IMG/VR virus record: IMGVR_UViG_3300025770_001492
Location: 1 to 64,000 of that record
Reading direction: 5' to 3' (one strand)
DNA: 64,000 bases
The translations under genes and the position numbers were made by a program. This document shows positions 5,901 to 63,575 of this stretch, piece after piece; the stretch's first letter is position 1, and every line of letters starts with the position of its first letter. The notes under the pieces are model-generated. The model saw nothing but the letters and a program-made list of their open reading frames with translations. It searched no databases and was not told the origin of the DNA.

Positions 5901-6971
5901 TTAACTTCCAGATATTAACTCGCTAATTGAGCCATGTTCATGAGTCCTTCTGATTGACTGGGCAAATATTTTAGCTGTTTCGATAATGTGAGTATTCTTC
6001 AGAGTTGATTCATTTAATCTGAATGGAGGGATTGTGTCTGAAATAACTAATCGAGGGACTTCCTTCAAAAAATCATTCGCCTCGCCAACAAACAGTCCGT
6101 GAGTGGCGCATGCTGCCCACGGTTCTCCTCCGTGGCTTATAATCGCATCTATGCTTGACTTTATTGTTTTCCCGCTAGAAATCATATCGTCAAGTATGAT
6201 GACTCTCTTGTCTTTAACATCACCGATTATATCATCTCCAACAGTTACCGTTGAAGACATCTTTCCATTGTCGCCAGCGTTAGACACTCTTTCTTTATCG
6301 ACAGAAGCTAGGCCAATCTTAACGTCTTCACCCAATAAAGACTTTATTTTTTTTTCTAAAGAATTTCTAAATCTTCGGCACCTTCCTATGCCTCCAGAAT
6401 CGGGAGCAAGCACCACTAAGTTGTCTAAATCATTTTTCAAAGGATCTGGAATAGAATTCTTTTCATCAAAACCAAGCAAATAATCAACAAGAAGGTTTTT
6501 AATTTCTAGATTGTCAACAGTTAATGGCCGGTCACCAATTGGTGCAGAGTTTTGATAGGCTCCTAAATTATGAACATCCATCGTGATTGCACGCCTGACT
6601 CCCATGCTCTTAAGCAAATGACCAACATACTTTGTTGTAATTGGCGCACGACTCTCTGTTTTTCTGTCTTGTCTTGAAAATCCCCAATAAGGAGATATTA
6701 CGCTAATTTCCCCAGAGGACGCATCAATCAGCGAGCCAATAAAAGTAAGTAAATTCCAGTACTTTTCACCCACGCTCTGATCGTCATCTCCATAGGTAGA
6801 CTGAATGACGTAGCACTCAAAGCCTCTAACGTTTACATCGCTTTTTAGATAAGACTCAGTATCAGAAAAAAAGTTCTCAGTATGAGGAGAAACTGATAGG
6901 TCTAAATGGTCTGCAACTTTCTTCGCATAGTCGCCTGTTCCACTCAGGCCAAAGATTCGAACGTCTTTCAT
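5901..6971 (-). CDS. prs: ribose-phosphate pyrophosphokinase (PRPP synthetase)
   Basis: FSDTE, SRQDRK, MDVH, APDSGG, DKER, ILDDMISSGKT, ATHGLF. Confidence 0.93.
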   Translation of the reverse strand: MKDVRIFGLSGTGDYAKKVADHLDLSVSPHTENFFSDTESYLKSDVNVRGFECYVIQSTYGDDDQSVGEKYWNLLTFIGSLIDASSGEISVISPYWGFSRQDRKTESRAPITTKYVGHLLKSMGVRRAITMDVHNLGAYQNSAPIGDRPLTVDNLEIKNLLVDYLLGFDEKNSIPDPLKNDLDNLVVLAPDSGGIGRCRRFRNSLEKKIKSLLGEDVKIGLASVDKERVSNAGDNGKMSSTVTVGDDIIGDVKDKRVIILDDMISSGKTIKSSIDAIISHGGEPWAACATHGLFVGEANDFLKEVPRLVISDTIPPFRLNESTLKNTHIIETAKIFAQSIRRTHEHGSISELISGS

Positions 6972-46645: not shown

Positions 46646-46689
46646 ATTGTGTCATAAGTGACAATTTAACTTTGCAAAGGAGATATAAT

Positions 46690-46911
46690 ATGGCAACTTT
46701 TACAGTAAATCTTTCACCTGCGTTGGTGAATTTAGGAAGTGAAGGCGGATTAGATTCCAGCCTTGACGCAAACGGCAACTCTCTTCAGAGAAAATTACAC
46801 GCCGTAATGGTAGATAGCGGAGAAAAAATCGTCGGCAATTTGGCTGATGGTGCAACATTTGATGACAGCACTGATGGATTAGCATCCATTGACGGAATCG
46901 ATGCTGCATAA
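46690..46911 (+). CDS. small acidic protein, copy 1 of a tandem pair (putative virion protein)
   Basis: VNLSPALVNLG...LDANGNS.QRKLH...VGNLADGA; SD AAGGAG. Confidence 0.75.
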   Translation: MATFTVNLSPALVNLGSEGGLDSSLDANGNSLQRKLHAVMVDSGEKIVGNLADGATFDDSTDGLASIDGIDAA

Positions 46912-46971: not shown

Positions 46972-47019
46972 GTCCAAAAGCATAAATAAATTGAATCTTT
47001 ACTTTGCAAAGGAGATATT

Positions 47020-47244
47020 ATGGCGAATTATGTAGTTAATCTTTCACCTGCGTTGGTGAATTTAGGAACTGAAGGTTCACTTGATACTAGTCTTGATGCT
47101 AACGGAAACTCTGCACAGAGAAAACTCCATAGCACAATAGTTCCAAACGGAACTGACCTTAAAGTGGTCGGAAATCTAGCTGACGGTGCTTCGTTCAACG
47201 ACACAATCGAAGTCATTTCTGATATCGATGGAATTGACGCTTAA
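47020..47244 (+). CDS. small acidic protein, copy 2 of the tandem pair
   Basis: Clear paralogue of 46690-46911. Confidence 0.75.
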   Translation: MANYVVNLSPALVNLGTEGSLDTSLDANGNSAQRKLHSTIVPNGTDLKVVGNLADGASFNDTIEVISDIDGIDA

Positions 47245-47270
47245 TCAAAAAAGATTATAGCTTAAACAAG

Positions 47271-47309
47271 AAAAGGTTCCCGAAACGAATTTCGGGAACC
47301 TTTTTTTGT
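47271..47309. terminator. bidirectional terminator
   Basis: AAAAGGTTCCCGAAA/TTTCGGGAACCTTTT. Confidence 0.85.
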
Positions 47310-47342
47310 TTACTTGTTGCAACTGCAACTAGATTATTTGTT

Positions 47343-48338: not shown

Positions 48339-48503
48339 ATGGATCTTTTAAGAATTATTGGCTCAGTGCTGCTCCCGCCTGTGGGAGTTTTCATGCAAGT
48401 AGGACTAGGATTCCATTTCTGGTTGAATATTCTGTTAACTTTGTTTGGATATATTCCCGGTTTGTTGCATGCTTTATGGATCATTTTAAAAGAAAATGAT
48501 TAA
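48339..48503 (+). CDS. YqaE/Pmp3 family small membrane protein (54 aa, missing from the ORF track)
   Basis: Manual translation ...LLPPVGVFMQVG...FWLNILLTLFGYIPGLLHALW; SD AAGGAGG. Confidence 0.9.
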   Translation: MDLLRIIGSVLLPPVGVFMQVGLGFHFWLNILLTLFGYIPGLLHALWIILKEND

Positions 48504-48532
48504 ACAAAAAACCCGCCAGAGGCGGGTTTTTT
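48504..48532. terminator. bidirectional terminator
   Basis: AAAAAACCCGCC/GGCGGGTTTTTT. Confidence 0.88.
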
Positions 48533-48770
48533 ATTTCTCATGTTCAAGCCACTCTACCGAGTAAAGACCATCCTCGTATGTTCCATATCCATCAGCCTTG
48601 CAATTAGAACATGTCACAGATTCGCCTGTTCTAGGATATTCCGATTCAAAATTTGAATAGCAACAACCGCACCTTATCATGTTTTTCGAATCAATTCGCC
48701 CTACGCTTGCTTCGCCTTCCTCTTTTTTACTTTGTCTTTCGAACCATTCTTTACTCAATCTTAATTTCAT
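48531..48770 (-). CDS. zinc-ribbon protein
   Basis: CGCC...CSNC. Confidence 0.5.
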   Translation of the reverse strand: MKLRLSKEWFERQSKKEEGEASVGRIDSKNMIRCGCCYSNFESEYPRTGESVTCSNCKADGYGTYEDGLYSVEWLEHEK

Positions 48771-48821: not shown

Positions 48822-49886
48822 TTAGTTTCCAGTTTTATCCAAGTAAATCGGGTCACGTTGCTTGATCATAAGACGACCAATGAGACCATGACTAGATTCA
48901 GTCATAGGTCGAATTACAATTCCCTCACGCAAACGATCTTTGTTAATTTTAGACTTCCCATTAGACATTTCAACAATAGTCTTATCACCCAACCATTCAC
49001 GTAGAGTAACGTTCTCTCCAAGAATAGGTGCCATGCGATCCTCTAGCTTCTTATCACGAAGAATAGAAACTAGCCTATTAGCATCTGTCCATTTACCATC
49101 GATTTTAAGATCAAAGAACCTCACAGTCTTTTCACTGAGTTTGTAATAGTTACCTTGAATGGCAGTGCCATGAGCTTCACCATAAAGAGTTACAGATACT
49201 GCACTCTCATCAGAAAGAATCTCTTTCGCAAGATCAATGATCTTCTCACGACGAGCAACTTCCCACAGATAGTGTTCTCCACCATCTTTTTCAAGGATGG
49301 AATGATTGCGTTGGTTTACATGTACGCTTCCACTAACAGTTACAGTTACAGAAAAATTTTGACCTTCTACTTTTTCAGTAACAATAATTGACACACCACT
49401 GTCAAGAATACTTTGCACAACAACTGGATAGTTTTCACAACCCTCAATGTCGTATTTTGATACACCATCTGGCAATGGCACAAGATCACAATTCTGACAA
49501 GAGATAGGCTCTGGTTCATATTTGGTAATGCCGAGAGCATCAGTAAGGTCCATGCCATGCATATCATCTACATCAACGTTCAGATGACTAGCAACTGATG
49601 CTACGTCAGCGATGAATCCCTGAGAGATTTCTTTGCGCAGCTTGACAGTTTTTACACGGTTGTGCTCTTTACCCGCCAACATGGTGCCAAGCCCAAATAA
49701 TTCGATTAACTCTGGAGTCATCACAGACTCTACAGGGAAATAAACTACTTTATCTCCAATGTCATAAGGAACATTTGAGATAAACTGATAACCAAGATCG
49801 TTTAACTTATAGATAGTCAAACGATCTGCGTTCGGATGTTGGATAACTTGATCAATAGTTTTGACTTCGACTTCAAATTTGCTCAT
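48822..49886 (-). CDS. RNA ligase, DRB0094 (Rnl2-like) family
   Basis: HPNADRL N-terminal domain, RVKTVKLRKEISQG, TEKVEGQN, YGE, FFD, REGIVIR. Confidence 0.9.
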   Translation of the reverse strand: MSKFEVEVKTIDQVIQHPNADRLTIYKLNDLGYQFISNVPYDIGDKVVYFPVESVMTPELIELFGLGTMLAGKEHNRVKTVKLRKEISQGFIADVASVASHLNVDVDDMHGMDLTDALGITKYEPEPISCQNCDLVPLPDGVSKYDIEGCENYPVVVQSILDSGVSIIVTEKVEGQNFSVTVTVSGSVHVNQRNHSILEKDGGEHYLWEVARREKIIDLAKEILSDESAVSVTLYGEAHGTAIQGNYYKLSEKTVRFFDLKIDGKWTDANRLVSILRDKKLEDRMAPILGENVTLREWLGDKTIVEMSNGKSKINKDRLREGIVIRPMTESSHGLIGRLMIKQRDPIYLDKTGN

Positions 49887-50124: not shown

Positions 50125-51063
50125 TTAACCTCCAACTATTTTGAATATACCATTTAAATCGTCATCTCTAGAACAGGAAGTAGTGTGTAAGAATATAGAA
50201 TCGTTATCAAAAATTTTACTAAAATTAAACCTACAAGGATCGTCGTATGTAAACTCTCTAAAATCTTTTATGTCCCAACCGTGAGAACAAATTTCTAAAC
50301 CACTTTTTATTTTTTTCTGATCGTTGTTTGCAGTGTTTATCGCCAACTCAATTAAATGCTCGTCTTGTATCCACCTTGTGCTACGACCTATTTTTTTTGA
50401 AACAATCTTTTGTACTTCTAAGATATTGTCTAGCCCCTGTTTACTGCTTAGTGAAAGATTACATTTCTCAAGTCTAGTAACCAAAAGCTCGCAAAACTCT
50501 CTTGTTAGTAGTGCAAATCCAGTATTAAATACGGTGTCTTGATTTAACGTAATATCTAAGTGTTCAACGAAAGCTTTTCGTATAAAAAATCTAGCTTTTA
50601 GATACCAAGGGAAAGGTAAAGCGTCCCAATCTGGAATCGGCTCCACCGTTTCCAAAGCCTGTAAACCATTTTTTTCTTGTTCGGGGAAATCTTTATGCTG
50701 AATATAGCTAATGCCATCACGACACCAATCTCTGATATTATTGATGTGTCTTTTTTTATTTATAATAAATGTATCTAGATCCATAAATAATCCATAATCA
50801 TCTCCAGAATCTAAAAAATCATATATTCTAACAAACTTCCTCAAGAGAGGGCAAAGGGGTAAATTGATTAATTGTCTAACTAGATAGTGCTTATCGTCTA
50901 AAACGTTTAGCTTTATGCCATCTTGAGAAAAATAACTAAACTGAGAAGCCAAAGATGTCAAATGCCACTGTTCAACGACTGGCATCGTATTTAATAAATA
51001 GGCCGATATTTTAACCATCTTCTTTCCTGTCTGTAAAAAATTTATAAAGTCTTCCCGCCGCAT
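50125..51063 (-). CDS. GT-A-like protein, paralogue of 13717-14628
   Basis: Shared LNTMP, NVLDD.HYLVRQ, PLLRK, YDFLDSG.DYGLF.DLDT. Confidence 0.6.
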   Translation of the reverse strand: MRREDFINFLQTGKKMVKISAYLLNTMPVVEQWHLTSLASQFSYFSQDGIKLNVLDDKHYLVRQLINLPLCPLLRKFVRIYDFLDSGDDYGLFMDLDTFIINKKRHINNIRDWCRDGISYIQHKDFPEQEKNGLQALETVEPIPDWDALPFPWYLKARFFIRKAFVEHLDITLNQDTVFNTGFALLTREFCELLVTRLEKCNLSLSSKQGLDNILEVQKIVSKKIGRSTRWIQDEHLIELAINTANNDQKKIKSGLEICSHGWDIKDFREFTYDDPCRFNFSKIFDNDSIFLHTTSCSRDDDLNGIFKIVGG

Positions 51064-51166
51064 CTAGTTTATGCTCTTTAAATTCTAATAAGCCGTTATC
51101 ATTTATAAAAACATCCTCATCAATATTAATTTTACACTCTGGGAGGGAAGCAGCAAAATCTGTAGT

Positions 51167-52921
51167 TCAAGAAAAGATTTTTAAGAAGCTAGACTTGTCC
51201 AGATTGTCCAAAGAGAAGTCGTAATCTGCATCTTCAGGGCAGCTAACAATCTCTGCTCCCAAGATCATCACAATCTCTTTAAAAGACAAAGGATTCGTCC
51301 ATTGTTGCTTCAACGCCTCAATGCCCTCTGTGCCTCTGGAAACCCTAGCGTTTCCTTTGCCGAAGTTAAGCAGCACAAAGCATTGGCGTTCTGGGACCGA
51401 TGGTAAAAGCATCCCCAAGATGGTTTGTTGCTGAACCGAGTTGGTTACACACTCAAAAGCAACCTTGTTTGGGTCCATCATGTATTCATGAGAAACTTTT
51501 GGAGCATATCCAACAACAATTTTATATTTGCAATCTGGTTCGCCAGAATAGACATTGTTAACCATCAAATACTCTGAATCGCAACTCTCTCCTACGTGCA
51601 TGTATTCCACAGCACCGTTTGGAGCATCAGTAATGTCCCCAGAGTAAGTAAGATCGCCATCGTGAAAGCTGGCGTTCCAGCCAACCTTTGATCCGCTAAT
51701 GTTCATTGCAGAAAGATCCAAGTCGTTCGCTCCCCAAGAATTTTCCCAATAAATTCCTACAGCAATTCTTTCGCCATAAAATTTAGTTCCAGTGGGAATA
51801 TTTCCAACAAACATTTTTTCTGAAGTGGGGAGAGCATATTCGACTTCTTTGGGGAAATAGAATTTTTTACCACTCAAATTGTATCGGTTCTTAAGACTCT
51901 GGATGATCAGGGAAACATTTGCGGTCATCACATTGTTTTGCCCCTCACTCAATGGATTTTGCTTTGTCCAACTTTTACCGTTTCTAATACGGTATACAAA
52001 GTTGTCCTGCCCATTCTGCCTGCTGTGGCAGGCAGAAAGTGCCTTAAACATCGCAAATGGAGTTGCGTTCTCAAGCCAGTGCAACTCACTCTCATCGAGA
52101 AGACGATGAGTCACCATATTCAATGGATTTTGCACCAAAGGCTTGTGGTTGCTTTTTGAAAGCTTTGAGATCTTGTTGACAACAGATGAGCACTTTGCCT
52201 TGTATGCCAAAAACAAAGGCTTGAATCGATTAAAAACTTCAGCAAGATTTTCCAGACCAAAACTAACAAACAGTTTTTCTGGATTGAAACCACTGGCCTT
52301 GATTGCAGCAATTGTTTCATTGTTCTTAATCAAAAGAGTTTCGCCTGTAGTCTTGAAAAGAACGTACCGCAAAAACTCCGCAGTATCCTTGGGCAGAACT
52401 CCGCAATCATCTGCAATCTTTATGATTGCCTCTTTATTCCTGATTCCTTCATCGCCAGAAAACTTGTATTCCAATTCTTCTGTCAAAACAGAAAGAATGC
52501 AGTCAACAGTTTCCTCTTTCATTGCGATGCCAGAACGAAGCATATTAAGACACTTCTCAGTCATTTCTTTGACTGAATATGCCTTGATGACCTTGAACGT
52601 CAGCTTAACATCAGGTACTTCTGCAATTCCTTCTGGATAGTATGCCTCTGCCTGAAAGTCAGAGCCATACGTGCTGAAATAGTGACTGATCTGGTCAAGG
52701 TACAATTCGTACCTTGAGCTATTTTGAACCTTTTCCCAAGACTTATAAAAAGTCTTGTTCAAATCGTTCCCACTCAGCTTCTGGGCATCGTAGTAGCTTA
52801 CAATCTGATCCTTTGCCCAAAGCGCATTAGGTTCGATGATGTAACCATCGTCACTGAGGTGAACCAAAGGATTGTTAGATTCTTTTGCTACAACTGCGTT
52901 AAAAAGCTCAAGGGTTTTCAT
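51167..52921 (-). CDS. large protein with helical N-terminal region and C-terminal TerD-like domain
   Basis: GIYWEN...DLDLSAM...YSGDITDAPNGAVEY TerD-like motifs. Confidence 0.65.
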   Translation of the reverse strand: MKTLELFNAVVAKESNNPLVHLSDDGYIIEPNALWAKDQIVSYYDAQKLSGNDLNKTFYKSWEKVQNSSRYELYLDQISHYFSTYGSDFQAEAYYPEGIAEVPDVKLTFKVIKAYSVKEMTEKCLNMLRSGIAMKEETVDCILSVLTEELEYKFSGDEGIRNKEAIIKIADDCGVLPKDTAEFLRYVLFKTTGETLLIKNNETIAAIKASGFNPEKLFVSFGLENLAEVFNRFKPLFLAYKAKCSSVVNKISKLSKSNHKPLVQNPLNMVTHRLLDESELHWLENATPFAMFKALSACHSRQNGQDNFVYRIRNGKSWTKQNPLSEGQNNVMTANVSLIIQSLKNRYNLSGKKFYFPKEVEYALPTSEKMFVGNIPTGTKFYGERIAVGIYWENSWGANDLDLSAMNISGSKVGWNASFHDGDLTYSGDITDAPNGAVEYMHVGESCDSEYLMVNNVYSGEPDCKYKIVVGYAPKVSHEYMMDPNKVAFECVTNSVQQQTILGMLLPSVPERQCFVLLNFGKGNARVSRGTEGIEALKQQWTNPLSFKEIVMILGAEIVSCPEDADYDFSLDNLDKSSFLKIFS

Positions 52922-52939
52922 AATTAAAATCCTGAAAAA

Positions 52940-52987
52940 GGCGAAGAGTAAAAATTCATTGGTATTTTTATAGGAACTCTTTATGCC
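52940..52987 (-). ncRNA. bulged hairpin RNA motif, copy A
   Basis: GGC-AUA-AAGAGU-UCCUAU-AAAAA...UUUUU-ACUCUU-CGCC followed by a U-tract. Confidence 0.7.
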
Positions 52988-53002
52988 TATGATTCAAAAA
53001 GA

Positions 53003-53055
53003 CGGCGAGCAGTAAAACTATCATTTATAAGATTTTATAGGAACTGCTTTTGCCG
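53003..53055 (-). ncRNA. bulged hairpin RNA motif, copy B
   Basis: CGGC-AAA-AGCAGU-UCCUAU-AAAA...UUUU-ACUGCU-CGCCG; compensatory pairs relative to copy A. Confidence 0.7.
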
Positions 53056-53064
53056 AACACTCAT

Positions 53065-53092
53065 ACTATACGACTTTGATTTCAGATGTAAA
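53065..53092 (-). promoter_or_regulatory. promoter TTTACA-N16-GTCG-containing-TATAGT
   Basis: Same motif as the 5265-5424 repeats; predicted start just before hairpin B. Confidence 0.8.
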
Positions 53093-53116
53093 CCTACATT
53101 TGTGAAAAGTTTGTAG

Positions 53117-53347
53117 CTAATAACTCCAAACTTTTCTTATATGAGACAAACTGTCCCCGTATTTTTCTTTTAACTTATTCATTAACTTTGACCTATCGTC
53201 AGAGACAAAAGACTCTTCTGAGACTGGATAGCCTTCAGGATACACAGAAGGCGGAACAATTCTCAAGGACTCCTCGACATGTGTTAAACGCTTGTCTTTC
53301 CAAATGAAAAAAGACACACGCCTGATCGTAACATCACTCATAACCAT
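53117..53347 (-). CDS. hypothetical protein
   Basis: Coupled ORF. Confidence 0.5.
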   Translation of the reverse strand: MVMSDVTIRRVSFFIWKDKRLTHVEESLRIVPPSVYPEGYPVSEESFVSDDRSKLMNKLKEKYGDSLSHIRKVWSY

Positions 53348-55136: not shown

Positions 55137-55258
55137 TCGTTTTCCTTTTTCAAGTTTTTCAATCTTTTTCTTACAGCATTGTCAGAAACTTTGTAAAATC
55201 TTCCAGTAGCACAGAAGTTGTTTTTAAATTCTTTAAGCTTGCTTTCAAGTTCTTCTAA

Positions 55259-55330
55259 TACCGCATGGGAGTTTCGATCTCCCTCCTGCTGTTAGAAAGA
55301 CAGCCGACCTAGCCAGTAGTCGAATGCGGC
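55259..55330 (-). tRNA. trnE: tRNA-Glu(UUC)
   Basis: GCCGCAT/ATGCGGT acceptor, GCTGT-CTTTCTA-ACAGC anticodon arm, atypical T loop ATCGAAA. Confidence 0.82.
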
Positions 55331-55338
55331 ATTCTAAG

Positions 55339-55411
55339 CTCTCCGAGTAGGACTTGAACCTACAACCTAGCGGTTAACAGCCGCTCGCTCTACCAATTGA
55401 GCTATCGGAGA
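55339..55411 (-). tRNA. trnN: tRNA-Asn(GUU)
   Basis: TCTCCGA/TCGGAGA acceptor, CTGTTAA loop, canonical D and T arms. Confidence 0.95.
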
Positions 55412-55417
55412 TTAAAG

Positions 55418-55455
55418 AGCCAACCGTGAGACTCGAACTCACAACCTGTTGATTA
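55418..55455 (-). tRNA. trnT: 3' half of split tRNA-Thr(UGU)
   Basis: TAA-TCAAC-AGGTT-GTGAG-TTCGAGT-CTCAC-GGTTGGC-T; complements the 5' half at 55614-55648. Confidence 0.85.
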
Positions 55456-55456
55456 G

Positions 55457-55530
55457 AGCGAATGACGAGATTCGAACTCGCAATACTTCTGGGTGGAAAC
55501 CAGACGCTTTACCTAATAAGCTTCATTCGC
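55457..55530 (-). tRNA. trnG: tRNA-Gly(UCC), nested inside split tRNA-Thr
   Basis: GCGAATG/CATTCGC, TCTGG-TTTCCAC-CCAGA, U73. Confidence 0.9.
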
Positions 55531-55537
55531 AACTGAG

Positions 55538-55613
55538 TCGGGGAGACAGGATTTGAACCTGCGATAACTCCCGGCCCCAAACCGGGCGGACGACCAGACT
55601 GTCCAACTCCCCG
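55538..55613 (-). tRNA. trnP: tRNA-Pro(UGG), nested inside split tRNA-Thr
   Basis: CGGGGAG/CTCCCCG, CCCGG-TTTGGGG-CCGGG, C1-G72 and A73. Confidence 0.92.
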
Positions 55614-61943: not shown

Positions 61944-62146
61944 TTAATTTTCACCCTTCTCTTTCGCAGAGAGGTATGGACAACTTTTTTTCAGTTTTAA
62001 CTTTTTTTGGCGTTGTTTTGTTGATTCCGACATCAGAAAATGCCAAAAGCATGTTTTCGCCTTTTCTGGATCGCCTAACTGCTGCCTCGTTCAAAGCTTT
62101 AATAGTTTCCAAGCACCACATAGTTAACTTTCTGTAAATGATGAAG

Positions 62147-62206
62147 GATTCGAACTTGCGGCCTCAAGGTTATGAGCCTTGCGAGATACCCCTTCTCCAT
62201 CCTGCG
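62147..62206 (-). pseudogene. 3'-truncated initiator-like tRNA-Met(CAU)
   Basis: CGCAGGA start, GAGA/TCTC D stem, CAAGG-CTCATAA-CCTTG arm, TTCGAAT loop; 3' T-stem and acceptor strand do not pair. Confidence 0.7.
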
Positions 62207-62939: not shown

Positions 62940-63575
62940 CTAATCCTCTATCTCGGCTCGAATTTTTTCTATTGCGTTAAACGCACAGTGTCTTGCCCCC
63001 GCCCGTGTCATGTCGAAGCAATCACCTATTTCTTGCCAAGATTTATTCTCTAGAAATCTCATTTTCAGCATTTGTTTGTCTCTTTGATGTTTCTCTCCTT
63101 CAGAATCATCACAACTGAAAATTTTATCAAAATCCAAATCTGGGAGTTTTTCCTCTGCTTGTTCTTCAGGAAAATCAAGATTGTCTAACTCTGAAATTCT
63201 AACCAAAGGAATGTTTCTCTTTTTCCTCTGATTGAACTTAAACGAATCTAAGATTCTATTTCTCATGCATTTCCATGCGTAAGTCGAGAAGGCATCATTT
63301 ATGTGTGGATCATACGTTGACGCCGCATCCCATAAGCCAATCAAGGCAATTGAATATTCTTCTGAATCTCGAACCTCAATCGAATTTTTGACATAACGAG
63401 ACGCACATTTGAGAGCCAACCCAATGTGGTCTTCAACCGAAATAGGAACAATCTTTTCTTCTAGAAAAATTGTTTCTACAGGAATTTCAGATTTTAAAGG
63501 AGCAGAAATCAGATCTAACATAAACCAGTCTTTGGCGTTTAAAAGTAAATCATCCCTGATTCTGTTGTTGTTCAA
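62940..63575 (-). CDS. sigma-70 family RNA polymerase sigma factor (regions 2 and 4)
   Basis: IGLWDAASTYDP...AFSTYAWKCMRNRILD; MRFLENKSWQEIG HTH. Confidence 0.88.
   Translation of the reverse strand: MNNNRIRDDLLLNAKDWFMLDLISAPLKSEIPVETIFLEEKIVPISVEDHIGLALKCASRYVKNSIEVRDSEEYSIALIGLWDAASTYDPHINDAFSTYAWKCMRNRILDSFKFNQRKKRNIPLVRISELDNLDFPEEQAEEKLPDLDFDKIFSCDDSEGEKHQRDKQMLKMRFLENKSWQEIGDCFDMTRAGARHCAFNAIEKIRAEIED

Follow-up and report, generated by a model that had tools for sequence, protein, structure and literature searches.

Two hairpins encoded on the minus strand of the window (the whole 64,000-nt stretch of viral DNA analyzed here), directly upstream of the gene for a 584-aa protein (X), were supported as structures under selection at the RNA level. 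They belong to a large, widespread structured-RNA family that is absent from Rfam 15. The hairpins are probably the partner RNAs of X in a particle resembling that of Ro60 and Y RNA, which would serve the repair of tRNA or other RNA.

The two hairpins followed a common plan (Table 1), comprising an outer helix, an A-N-A loop facing a lone C, a 6-bp helix ending in G-U/A-C, the unpaired UCCUAU, and a variable apical part. Hairpin B was made up of CGGC / AAA / AGCAGU / UCCUAU / 23-nt apical part / ACUGCU / C / GCCG, with the outer helix CGGC/GCCG, UCCUAU at 53039–53034, the lone C at C53007, and GUCUUUUU after the GCCG. Hairpin A was made up of AGGC / AUA / AAGAGU / UCCUAU / AAAAAU-loop-AUUUUU / ACUCUU / C / GCCU, with UCCUAU at 52975–52970, the lone C at C52943, and an apical 6-bp A/U helix with an 8-nt loop. 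The initial annotation had described two hairpins of common architecture with two compensatory changes in the 6-bp helix, and all of these were present. Folded singly, both hairpins adopted the structure given above (z = −3.1 for B and −2.6 for A). Covariance model R1, described below, scored 56.2 bits on hairpin A (E 4.7e-13) and 55.4 bits on hairpin B (E 8e-13); it found only these two hairpins in the 64-kb window, and the next-best match reached 14 bits. In relatives whose X was 91–93% identical, the stems and conserved loops were unchanged; only the apical loops and the middle base of the 3-nt loop carried substitutions. A megablast search of the hairpin region against phage records gave no match. 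The same phage sequence was seen in many seawater metagenomes and in one run bearing an organism name.

Table 1. Features of the window around the hairpins and protein X.
Feature	Position	Strand	Basis or remark
Promoter candidate, sigma-70-like	53092–53065	−	TTTACA-16-TATAGT; consensus scan
Hairpin B, distal copy of the GUUCCUAU stem motif	53055–53003	−	Direct reading, folding, model R1
U run (five U) 3′ of hairpin B	53000–52996	−	Direct reading
Hairpin A, proximal copy	52988–52939	−	Direct reading, folding, model R1
U run (five U) 3′ of hairpin A	52939–52935	−	Direct reading
AGGA, ribosome-binding candidate	52933–52930	−	8 nt 5′ of the ATG at 52921
Protein X, 584 aa	51167–52921	−	ORF, homologue searches, predicted structure
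RNA ligase (Pfam RNA_ligase plus PHA02142 OB domain)	48822–49886	−	Two genes downstream of X
Four tRNA genes (Pro, Gly, Asn, Glu)	55258–55613	−	2.2 kb upstream

A promoter ahead of hairpin B had also been proposed, and this claim held in part. The site was present, and in relative L262 (X 91% identical), the sole close relative of the window phage whose sequence was read far enough upstream, sequence conservation began exactly at the −35 hexamer, with unrelated sequence beyond it. However, the window contained 39 promoter-like matches against 37.4 expected from shuffled sequence, which is no enrichment. A transcript started ~7–10 nt 3′ of this candidate would begin a few nt ahead of hairpin B. 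An inverted repeat (AAAAGUUUGGAG / CUACAAACUUUU, window 53101–53131) adjoined the promoter-like site on its 5′ side and overlapped the end of the upstream 76-aa ORF; this repeat may terminate the upstream transcript. A 225-nt contig of a marine metatranscriptome was identical to window 50845–51069, where the 312-aa ORF downstream of X begins; this metatranscriptome, the one in which the phage was detected, gave no other contig of it and nothing over the hairpins, and short RNAs would in any case escape assembly.

The family to which the hairpins belong was defined on 133 loci, each encoding a homologue of X, with the upstream region taken as the 600 nt before X (79.8 kb in all). The string GUUCCUNU had 379 occurrences in these upstream regions, compared with 84 elsewhere on the gene strand and 119 on the entire opposite strand of the loci (1.19 Mb). 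Of the upstream copies, 74% showed the complete architecture; with the downstream sequence shuffled, the share was 7.6%. The hairpin pattern is far beyond chance. Forty-three diverse copies formed the seed alignment A4, from which R1 was built. The pair cells of A4 were standard pairs in 97.3% of cases, nine of the 11 pairs changed on both sides, and the covariation score was 0.83, compared with 0.27 for shuffles and 0.09–0.21 for slid partners. Two of the outer pairs lay outside the selection filter, yet they covaried. In an independent set of 37 R1 hits from 13 non-seed contigs, 97.1% of the cells were paired and ten of the 11 pairs covaried, in agreement with the selection on RNA structure that the initial annotation had put forward from two copies. 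G-U was tolerated, at one pair in 11 of the 43 seed copies.

The invariant columns of A4 were GUUCCU, the U two positions on, and the UAC that opened the 3′ strand; near-invariance extended to the lone C and to the first and third bases of the 3-nt loop, both A. The search pattern prescribed the UCCU-N-U core but left its fifth base free, and this base was A in 183 of 211 copies. Among the other unpaired bases that the filter left free, the lone C was kept in 206 and the A-N-A in 200 of the 211 copies, and the U before AC was invariant in the seed. An apical GGA (mostly UGGA) was a minority trait, observed in 46 of the 182 unique short copies where shuffles would give 6.7. Pairing of this GGA with the UCC of UCCUAU is feasible and occurs in the minimum-energy folds of copies from L005 and L001, which hints at an alternative conformation or a subclass; both window copies were without the GGA.

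The motif was tied to the X family from both directions, as had been predicted. Across the 133 loci, R1 found 239 + 98 = 337 sites, and all 337 were on the gene strand; loci gathered later, with homologues 33–36% identical, carried two to four copies each. In the reverse test, 80 viral stretches were chosen by an 18-nt degenerate pattern alone. True R1 hits were present in 16 of them, and X was encoded within 13 of these 16 stretches and within none of the other 64. In one of the three hit-bearing stretches without X, the copies lay inside a cluster of 20 tRNA genes. Three loci with X (L096, L100, and L129) had no motif directly upstream of the gene, and L096 had one weak model match ~1.8 kb upstream of X.

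The copies formed tandem arrays of two to six on the strand of X, usually directly upstream of it, and their apical parts were usually 11–30 nt long. In 54 of 103 loci, the distance from the end of the proximal copy to the start codon was 10–30 nt. A proximal copy of the GGU/ACU type was nearly identical across genera of Bacteroidota. Arrays were also found downstream of X, apart from X, or within tRNA clusters (L003, L107, L127, L132, L130, and L218). The annotated hypothetical CDS L003:5995–6294 of phage Phass-1 overlapped an array of six hairpin copies (5986–6454) and is probably a mis-called ORF. The Rfam comparison called for in the initial annotation gave only chance-level matches for window 52800–53250 (E 0.7–4.5), with nothing at the gathering threshold. 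A literature search on the motif and protein X found no description of them, and the gene neighborhood of X may have been described in an earlier account.

An ordinary terminator family, the outcome that had been named as speaking against a specialized RNA, was ruled out as the explanation of the family. Each window hairpin was followed by a run of five U, as in a Rho-independent terminator. However, the stems of the motif were broken by the conserved 3x1 loop and the 6-nt bulge, only three or four G-C pairs adjoined the U run, and the invariant unpaired nucleotides set the motif apart from terminators. A U run followed 75% of the Bacteroidota copies but only 36% of the viral copies, being absent from the remaining 64%. 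A terminator scan of the window called neither hairpin.

A minority of the copies, some of them in phages, were long and contained pieces of tRNA. Some of the long copies were ordered as in YrlA (T arm, closed acceptor stem, D arm), and others carried a T arm and one small hairpin. The Rfam YrlA model (RF02553) matched five elements in four related loci (35.9, 40.8, 38.3, 37.0, and 31.2 bits); these matches covered the tRNA-like part only, and owing to the different stem none of them reached the gathering score of 69. In Chryseobacterium, the first array element contained a tRNA body in normal order, with 49 bits to the tRNA model RF00005. Its path ran from the D arm to the 3′ strand of the motif, through a terminal helix capped by a small loop, to the 5′ strand with UCCUAU and on to the T arm; ARAGORN called no tRNA at this element. 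Judging from the order of their parts, the two layouts represent a single architecture in circularly permuted forms, namely a tRNA-like body in which the motif stem replaces the anticodon arm. By tRNA numbering, the 6-bp helix would correspond to the anticodon stem and UCCUAU to the first part of the variable region, with the lone C and A-N-A as the flanks of the anticodon loop at positions 32 and 36–38. The window copies represented the minimal form, with an A/U-rich apical part of 20–23 nt and no tRNA body; they gave no match to RF00005 (>29 bits) and none to RF02553 even at E ≤ 10. In L119:2708–2830, a complete tRNA-Ile (GAU) gene occupied the apical position of one copy, with the stem strands on both sides.

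Homologues of X were first met in cyanophages S-CRM01 and S-CBWM1 and in gut phage Phass-1, and further ones were found in many Bacteroidota chromosomes and viral contigs. The genomes were scanned with a 12-sequence alignment. Clustering at 50% identity divided the family into at least 1,378 clusters, almost all of them full length. The AlphaFold model of X was confident (pLDDT 93.9, pTM 0.91) and divided the protein into a helical N-terminal domain (about residues 1–348) and an all-beta C-terminal domain (about 350–584). X matched nothing in Pfam, PHROGs, NCBIfam, or PADLOC. In sequence searches of the PDB, X alone gave nothing meaningful and the family profile gave nothing at E ≤ 10. Foldseek found no significant match to the whole model in the PDB, and for the N-terminal domain model (pLDDT 90.8) the best E was 0.14 with TM ≤ 0.21; ESM Atlas likewise returned nothing for this domain. 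Neither a recognized RNA-binding domain (Pfam and fold search) nor a catalytic fold or family (domain and fold searches) was detected in X. Invariant residues marked both halves of the protein, namely the polar N162, E164, R232, N249, and R313 in the N-terminal domain and the acidic positions D400, D402, S427-G428-D429, and E439 in the C-terminal domain.

The suggestion in the initial annotation that the N-terminal region is TROVE-like found no support in these searches. None of 64 family members matched Pfam TROVE (PF05731) at E ≤ 1, no Ro60 entry was among the best 50 of the 307 listed Foldseek matches of the N-terminal domain, and residues 350–530 were predicted to be all-beta, not the alpha/beta fold of vWA. 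The C-terminal domain gave a different lead. In ESM Atlas it led to TerD clusters with scores of 0.87–0.88 and 172–181 shared features (74 of 100 named hits), and the model of a look-alike gave TM 0.5–0.66. Among predicted viral structures (BFVD), the full-length matches were uncharacterized phage proteins, of which the best bore the name "tellurium resistant like protein". Pfam TerD (PF02342) matched none of 64 full-length members and none of ten isolated C-terminal domains at E ≤ 10, and no TerD structure was among the best 50 PDB matches of the X model. The label TerD-like is thus a reasonable but unproven lead.

The gene neighborhood linked X and the motif to RNA repair, as the initial annotation had supposed. 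In Chryseobacterium lactis, the order was a WYL regulator and HopJ (divergent), RtcB, a 350-nt gap with the RNA array, X, and, further on, RlaP. In Marivirga it was Hen1, Pnkp, DUF5677, the array, X, DUF5677, RlaP, one other gene, and RlaP. By tblastn of 81 genome loci, RtcB was located in 73 (70 with the gene upstream on the same strand as X, three with it in another place), WYL was divergent in 65, and RlaP was downstream in about 41; these bacterial data came mostly from Chryseobacterium, and the loci were not independent because most of them belonged to this one genus. The gene tables of L005 and L006 contained no TROVE gene. The Bacteroidota arrays occurred without neighboring tRNA genes. 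In phages and prophage-like regions, X was found in or beside clusters of tRNA and tmRNA genes on the same strand, and the window itself carried an RNA ligase gene and tRNA genes around X. The arrays of L218 and S-CRM01 were non-tRNA structured RNAs standing among phage tRNA genes on the same strand.

Several further features were noted in these neighborhoods. In six phage loci, tmRNA genes on the same strand were separated from X or the arrays by a few hundred to ~3,700 bases (L003:6461–6899, L101:5732–5986, L127:5843–6241, L134:2915–3191, L149:84–522, and L094:3530–3806). A near-threshold GOLLD RNA (136.9 bits against a gathering score of 150) was located at L083:2626–3105 (Winogradskyella), ~0.9 kb upstream of the array. 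The tRNA callers differed in the window: Rfam gave a weak tRNA at 62139–62201 (31.7 bits) that ARAGORN did not call, and the ARAGORN tRNA-Glu at 55258–55331 was not found by Rfam at the gathering score. Tandem repeats of ~130 nt were present at 46666–46799 and 46998–47129 (79% identical, 330 nt apart), both opening with TT(A/T)ACTTTGCAAAGGAGATAT(A/T)AT. Strong bidirectional terminator-like hairpins, with 15–20 bp stems and U/A runs on both sides, were found at 47265–47310 and 48502–48536, and a phage-encoded sigma-70-type factor was found at 62940–63575. The viral contig of the window (245.5 kb, IMG/VR) was rich in cell-like genes, including a ClpX-like ATPase, PRPP synthetase, PEP carboxykinase, an M42 peptidase, several sulfotransferases and glycosyltransferases, and an FGE-sulfatase-domain protein.

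Here, we propose that the arrays encode the RNA part of a particle with X, a reading that starts from the structure, the conservation, and the genomic association of the motif. The array would be transcribed from the promoter candidate just upstream and would give discrete short RNAs of ~55–60 nt, or else a structured leader. X would bind these RNAs through their invariant unpaired nucleotides, and the particle, like those of Ro60 and Y RNA, would join RNA ligases in dealing with damaged tRNA or other RNA. The motif would stand as a module in place of the tRNA anticodon arm, and in the window copies the body would have shrunk to a short A/U helix. For the phage, the particle, together with its own tRNAs, tmRNA, and ligase, might sustain translation when the host attacks with ribotoxins. 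The analogy with Ro60 and Y RNA was drawn because the RNAs are encoded beside X, the stem takes the position of the anticodon arm, a tRNA-like body is sometimes present, and RNA ligases are operon partners. The role like that of Y RNA, already suspected in the initial annotation, fits because relatives carry tRNA-like modules of the YrlA type. Several points count against partner RNAs: X lacks a recognized RNA-binding domain, no Ro60 entry is among its best 50 fold matches, three X loci have no motif directly upstream of the gene, the bacterial context is drawn mainly from one genus, and the position of the proximal copy in about half of the loci would suit a cis-acting operator too.

The main rival is a cis-acting leader, in which X or another factor would bind the hairpins of its own 5′ UTR and control termination or translation by autoregulation or attenuation, a possibility raised in the initial annotation too. 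The motif lies on the same strand as X and mostly upstream of it, its proximal copy is often close to the start codon and nearly identical in Bacteroidota when of the GGU/ACU type, and U runs follow both window hairpins and most Bacteroidota copies. However, arrays are also located downstream of X, apart from X, or in tRNA clusters, and therefore separate RNA genes are favored over a pure 5′ leader. A leader, moreover, would have no need of tRNA-like bodies, most viral copies lack the U run, and the terminator scan passed over the window hairpins. We consider a leader function unlikely as the explanation of the family, but it is compatible with the role of partner RNA, and the two may coexist.

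It is less probable still that the hairpins are substrates, which X would cut or modify, or signals for the stability or processing of polycistronic tRNA-cluster transcripts. Copies interspersed with tRNA genes, and the copy that encloses the tRNA-Ile gene, are consistent with such punctuation, and the invariant polar residues of the N-terminal domain could form an active site. However, the searches of X returned no catalytic fold or family, and the Bacteroidota arrays stand without adjoining tRNA genes. Loops whose sequence is invariant from cyanophages to Bacteroidota are also easier to reconcile with a dedicated ligand than with generic punctuation.

There is only a slight chance that the hairpins are decoys that mimic the anticodon stem and variable region of tRNA and soak up host anticodon nucleases during infection. 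The module does replace the anticodon arm in the tRNA-like versions, its lone C and A-N-A would fall at the equivalents of positions 32 and 36–38, and the phage context includes tRNAs and a ligase. However, the same arrays occur beside RtcB in bacterial chromosomes, which points to a shared cellular function, and a decoy would have no anticodon-like 7-nt loop here and would leave the strict linkage to X unexplained. Sites acting as DNA, either operators for the divergent WYL regulator or a mobile repeat, as the tandem repeats between the regulator-controlled RtcB gene and X in Chryseobacterium might suggest, are close to refuted, because the hits are strand-specific and G-U pairs are tolerated on the gene strand only; compensatory changes also preserve the pairing while the sequence varies freely, and phage loci carry the motif without WYL.

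If the hairpins are the partner RNAs of X, they would constitute an independent analogue of the Ro60/Y RNA system, in which the protein and the binding stem differ but the tRNA-like addition and the ligase partners are shared, and the design would then be a general solution. Chryseobacterium would offer a second genetically tractable system for asking what such particles do, and a large unnamed protein family would gain a likely class of function. Rfam lacks this strongly covarying RNA motif, which is now named and which accounts for recurrent "empty" intergenic stretches, and likely for some mis-called small ORFs, in phage tRNA islands.

Compared with known systems, the C-terminal half of X resembles TerD (PF02342), known from stress systems of the tellurite-resistance type, in being all-beta. 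It differs in its fusion to a 350-aa helical domain without a known fold, and no other Ter-system genes were among the annotated neighbors of X. The species 1 and species 2 RNAs of phage T4 are small stable RNAs of unknown function in a phage tRNA cluster. The motif, set beside them by description only, is similar in consisting of non-tRNA structured RNAs among phage tRNA genes, but it has a defined partner protein family and is also found in bacterial repair operons.

The closest likeness is to the particle of Ro60 (Rsr) and YrlA, whose RNA (RF02553) is encoded beside rsr and rtcB. In both systems, one to several small structured RNAs adjoin the gene of a two-domain protein of roughly 550–600 aa, a stem formed by the 5′ and 3′ ends of the RNA replaces the anticodon arm, and some copies carry the tRNA-like arms in the order of YrlA. 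Both have RtcB and a ligand-sensing regulator as operon partners, WYL here and the CARF-type RtcR in Salmonella (PMC7790460), and both occur in phages (PMC4201824, PMC7824862 for Ro60/Y RNA). However, neither Pfam nor the fold search identified X as a TROVE plus vWA protein, and most copies of the motif, including both in the window, have no tRNA-like body. The binding stem is also different, and its resemblance to Ro-binding stems, which the initial annotation had drawn from the bulged C, proved loose. The bacterial Ro-binding motif is GNCGAAN0-1G, and the vertebrate one is GGUCCGA with a bulged C (PMC4201824). In the present motif, GGC-ANA-NNNNGU-UCCUAU takes its place, the 5′ strand reads GGC-ANA-(N)G (GGCAAA(N)G in hairpin B), and the lone C is on the 3′ strand, not on the 5′ strand.

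We speculated that X represents a second, non-TROVE lineage of Ro-like particles, which we put forward tentatively. This family, with its novel-fold helical domain and its TerD-like domain, might bind Y-like RNAs of its own, ranging from bare hairpins to full tRNA mimics with the binding stem in place of the anticodon arm. In Bacteroidota and in many phages, among them cyanophages, gut phages, and marine jumbo phages, the particle might repair or survey tRNA together with RtcB, Pnkp/Hen1, or Rnl ligases. To our knowledge, Ro60/Y RNA has been the only family of protein-plus-tRNA-mimic particles tied to bacterial RNA repair. Viewed as an analogy, the logic of the present system matches that of Ro60 and Y RNA, and its protein and RNA-binding module are different.
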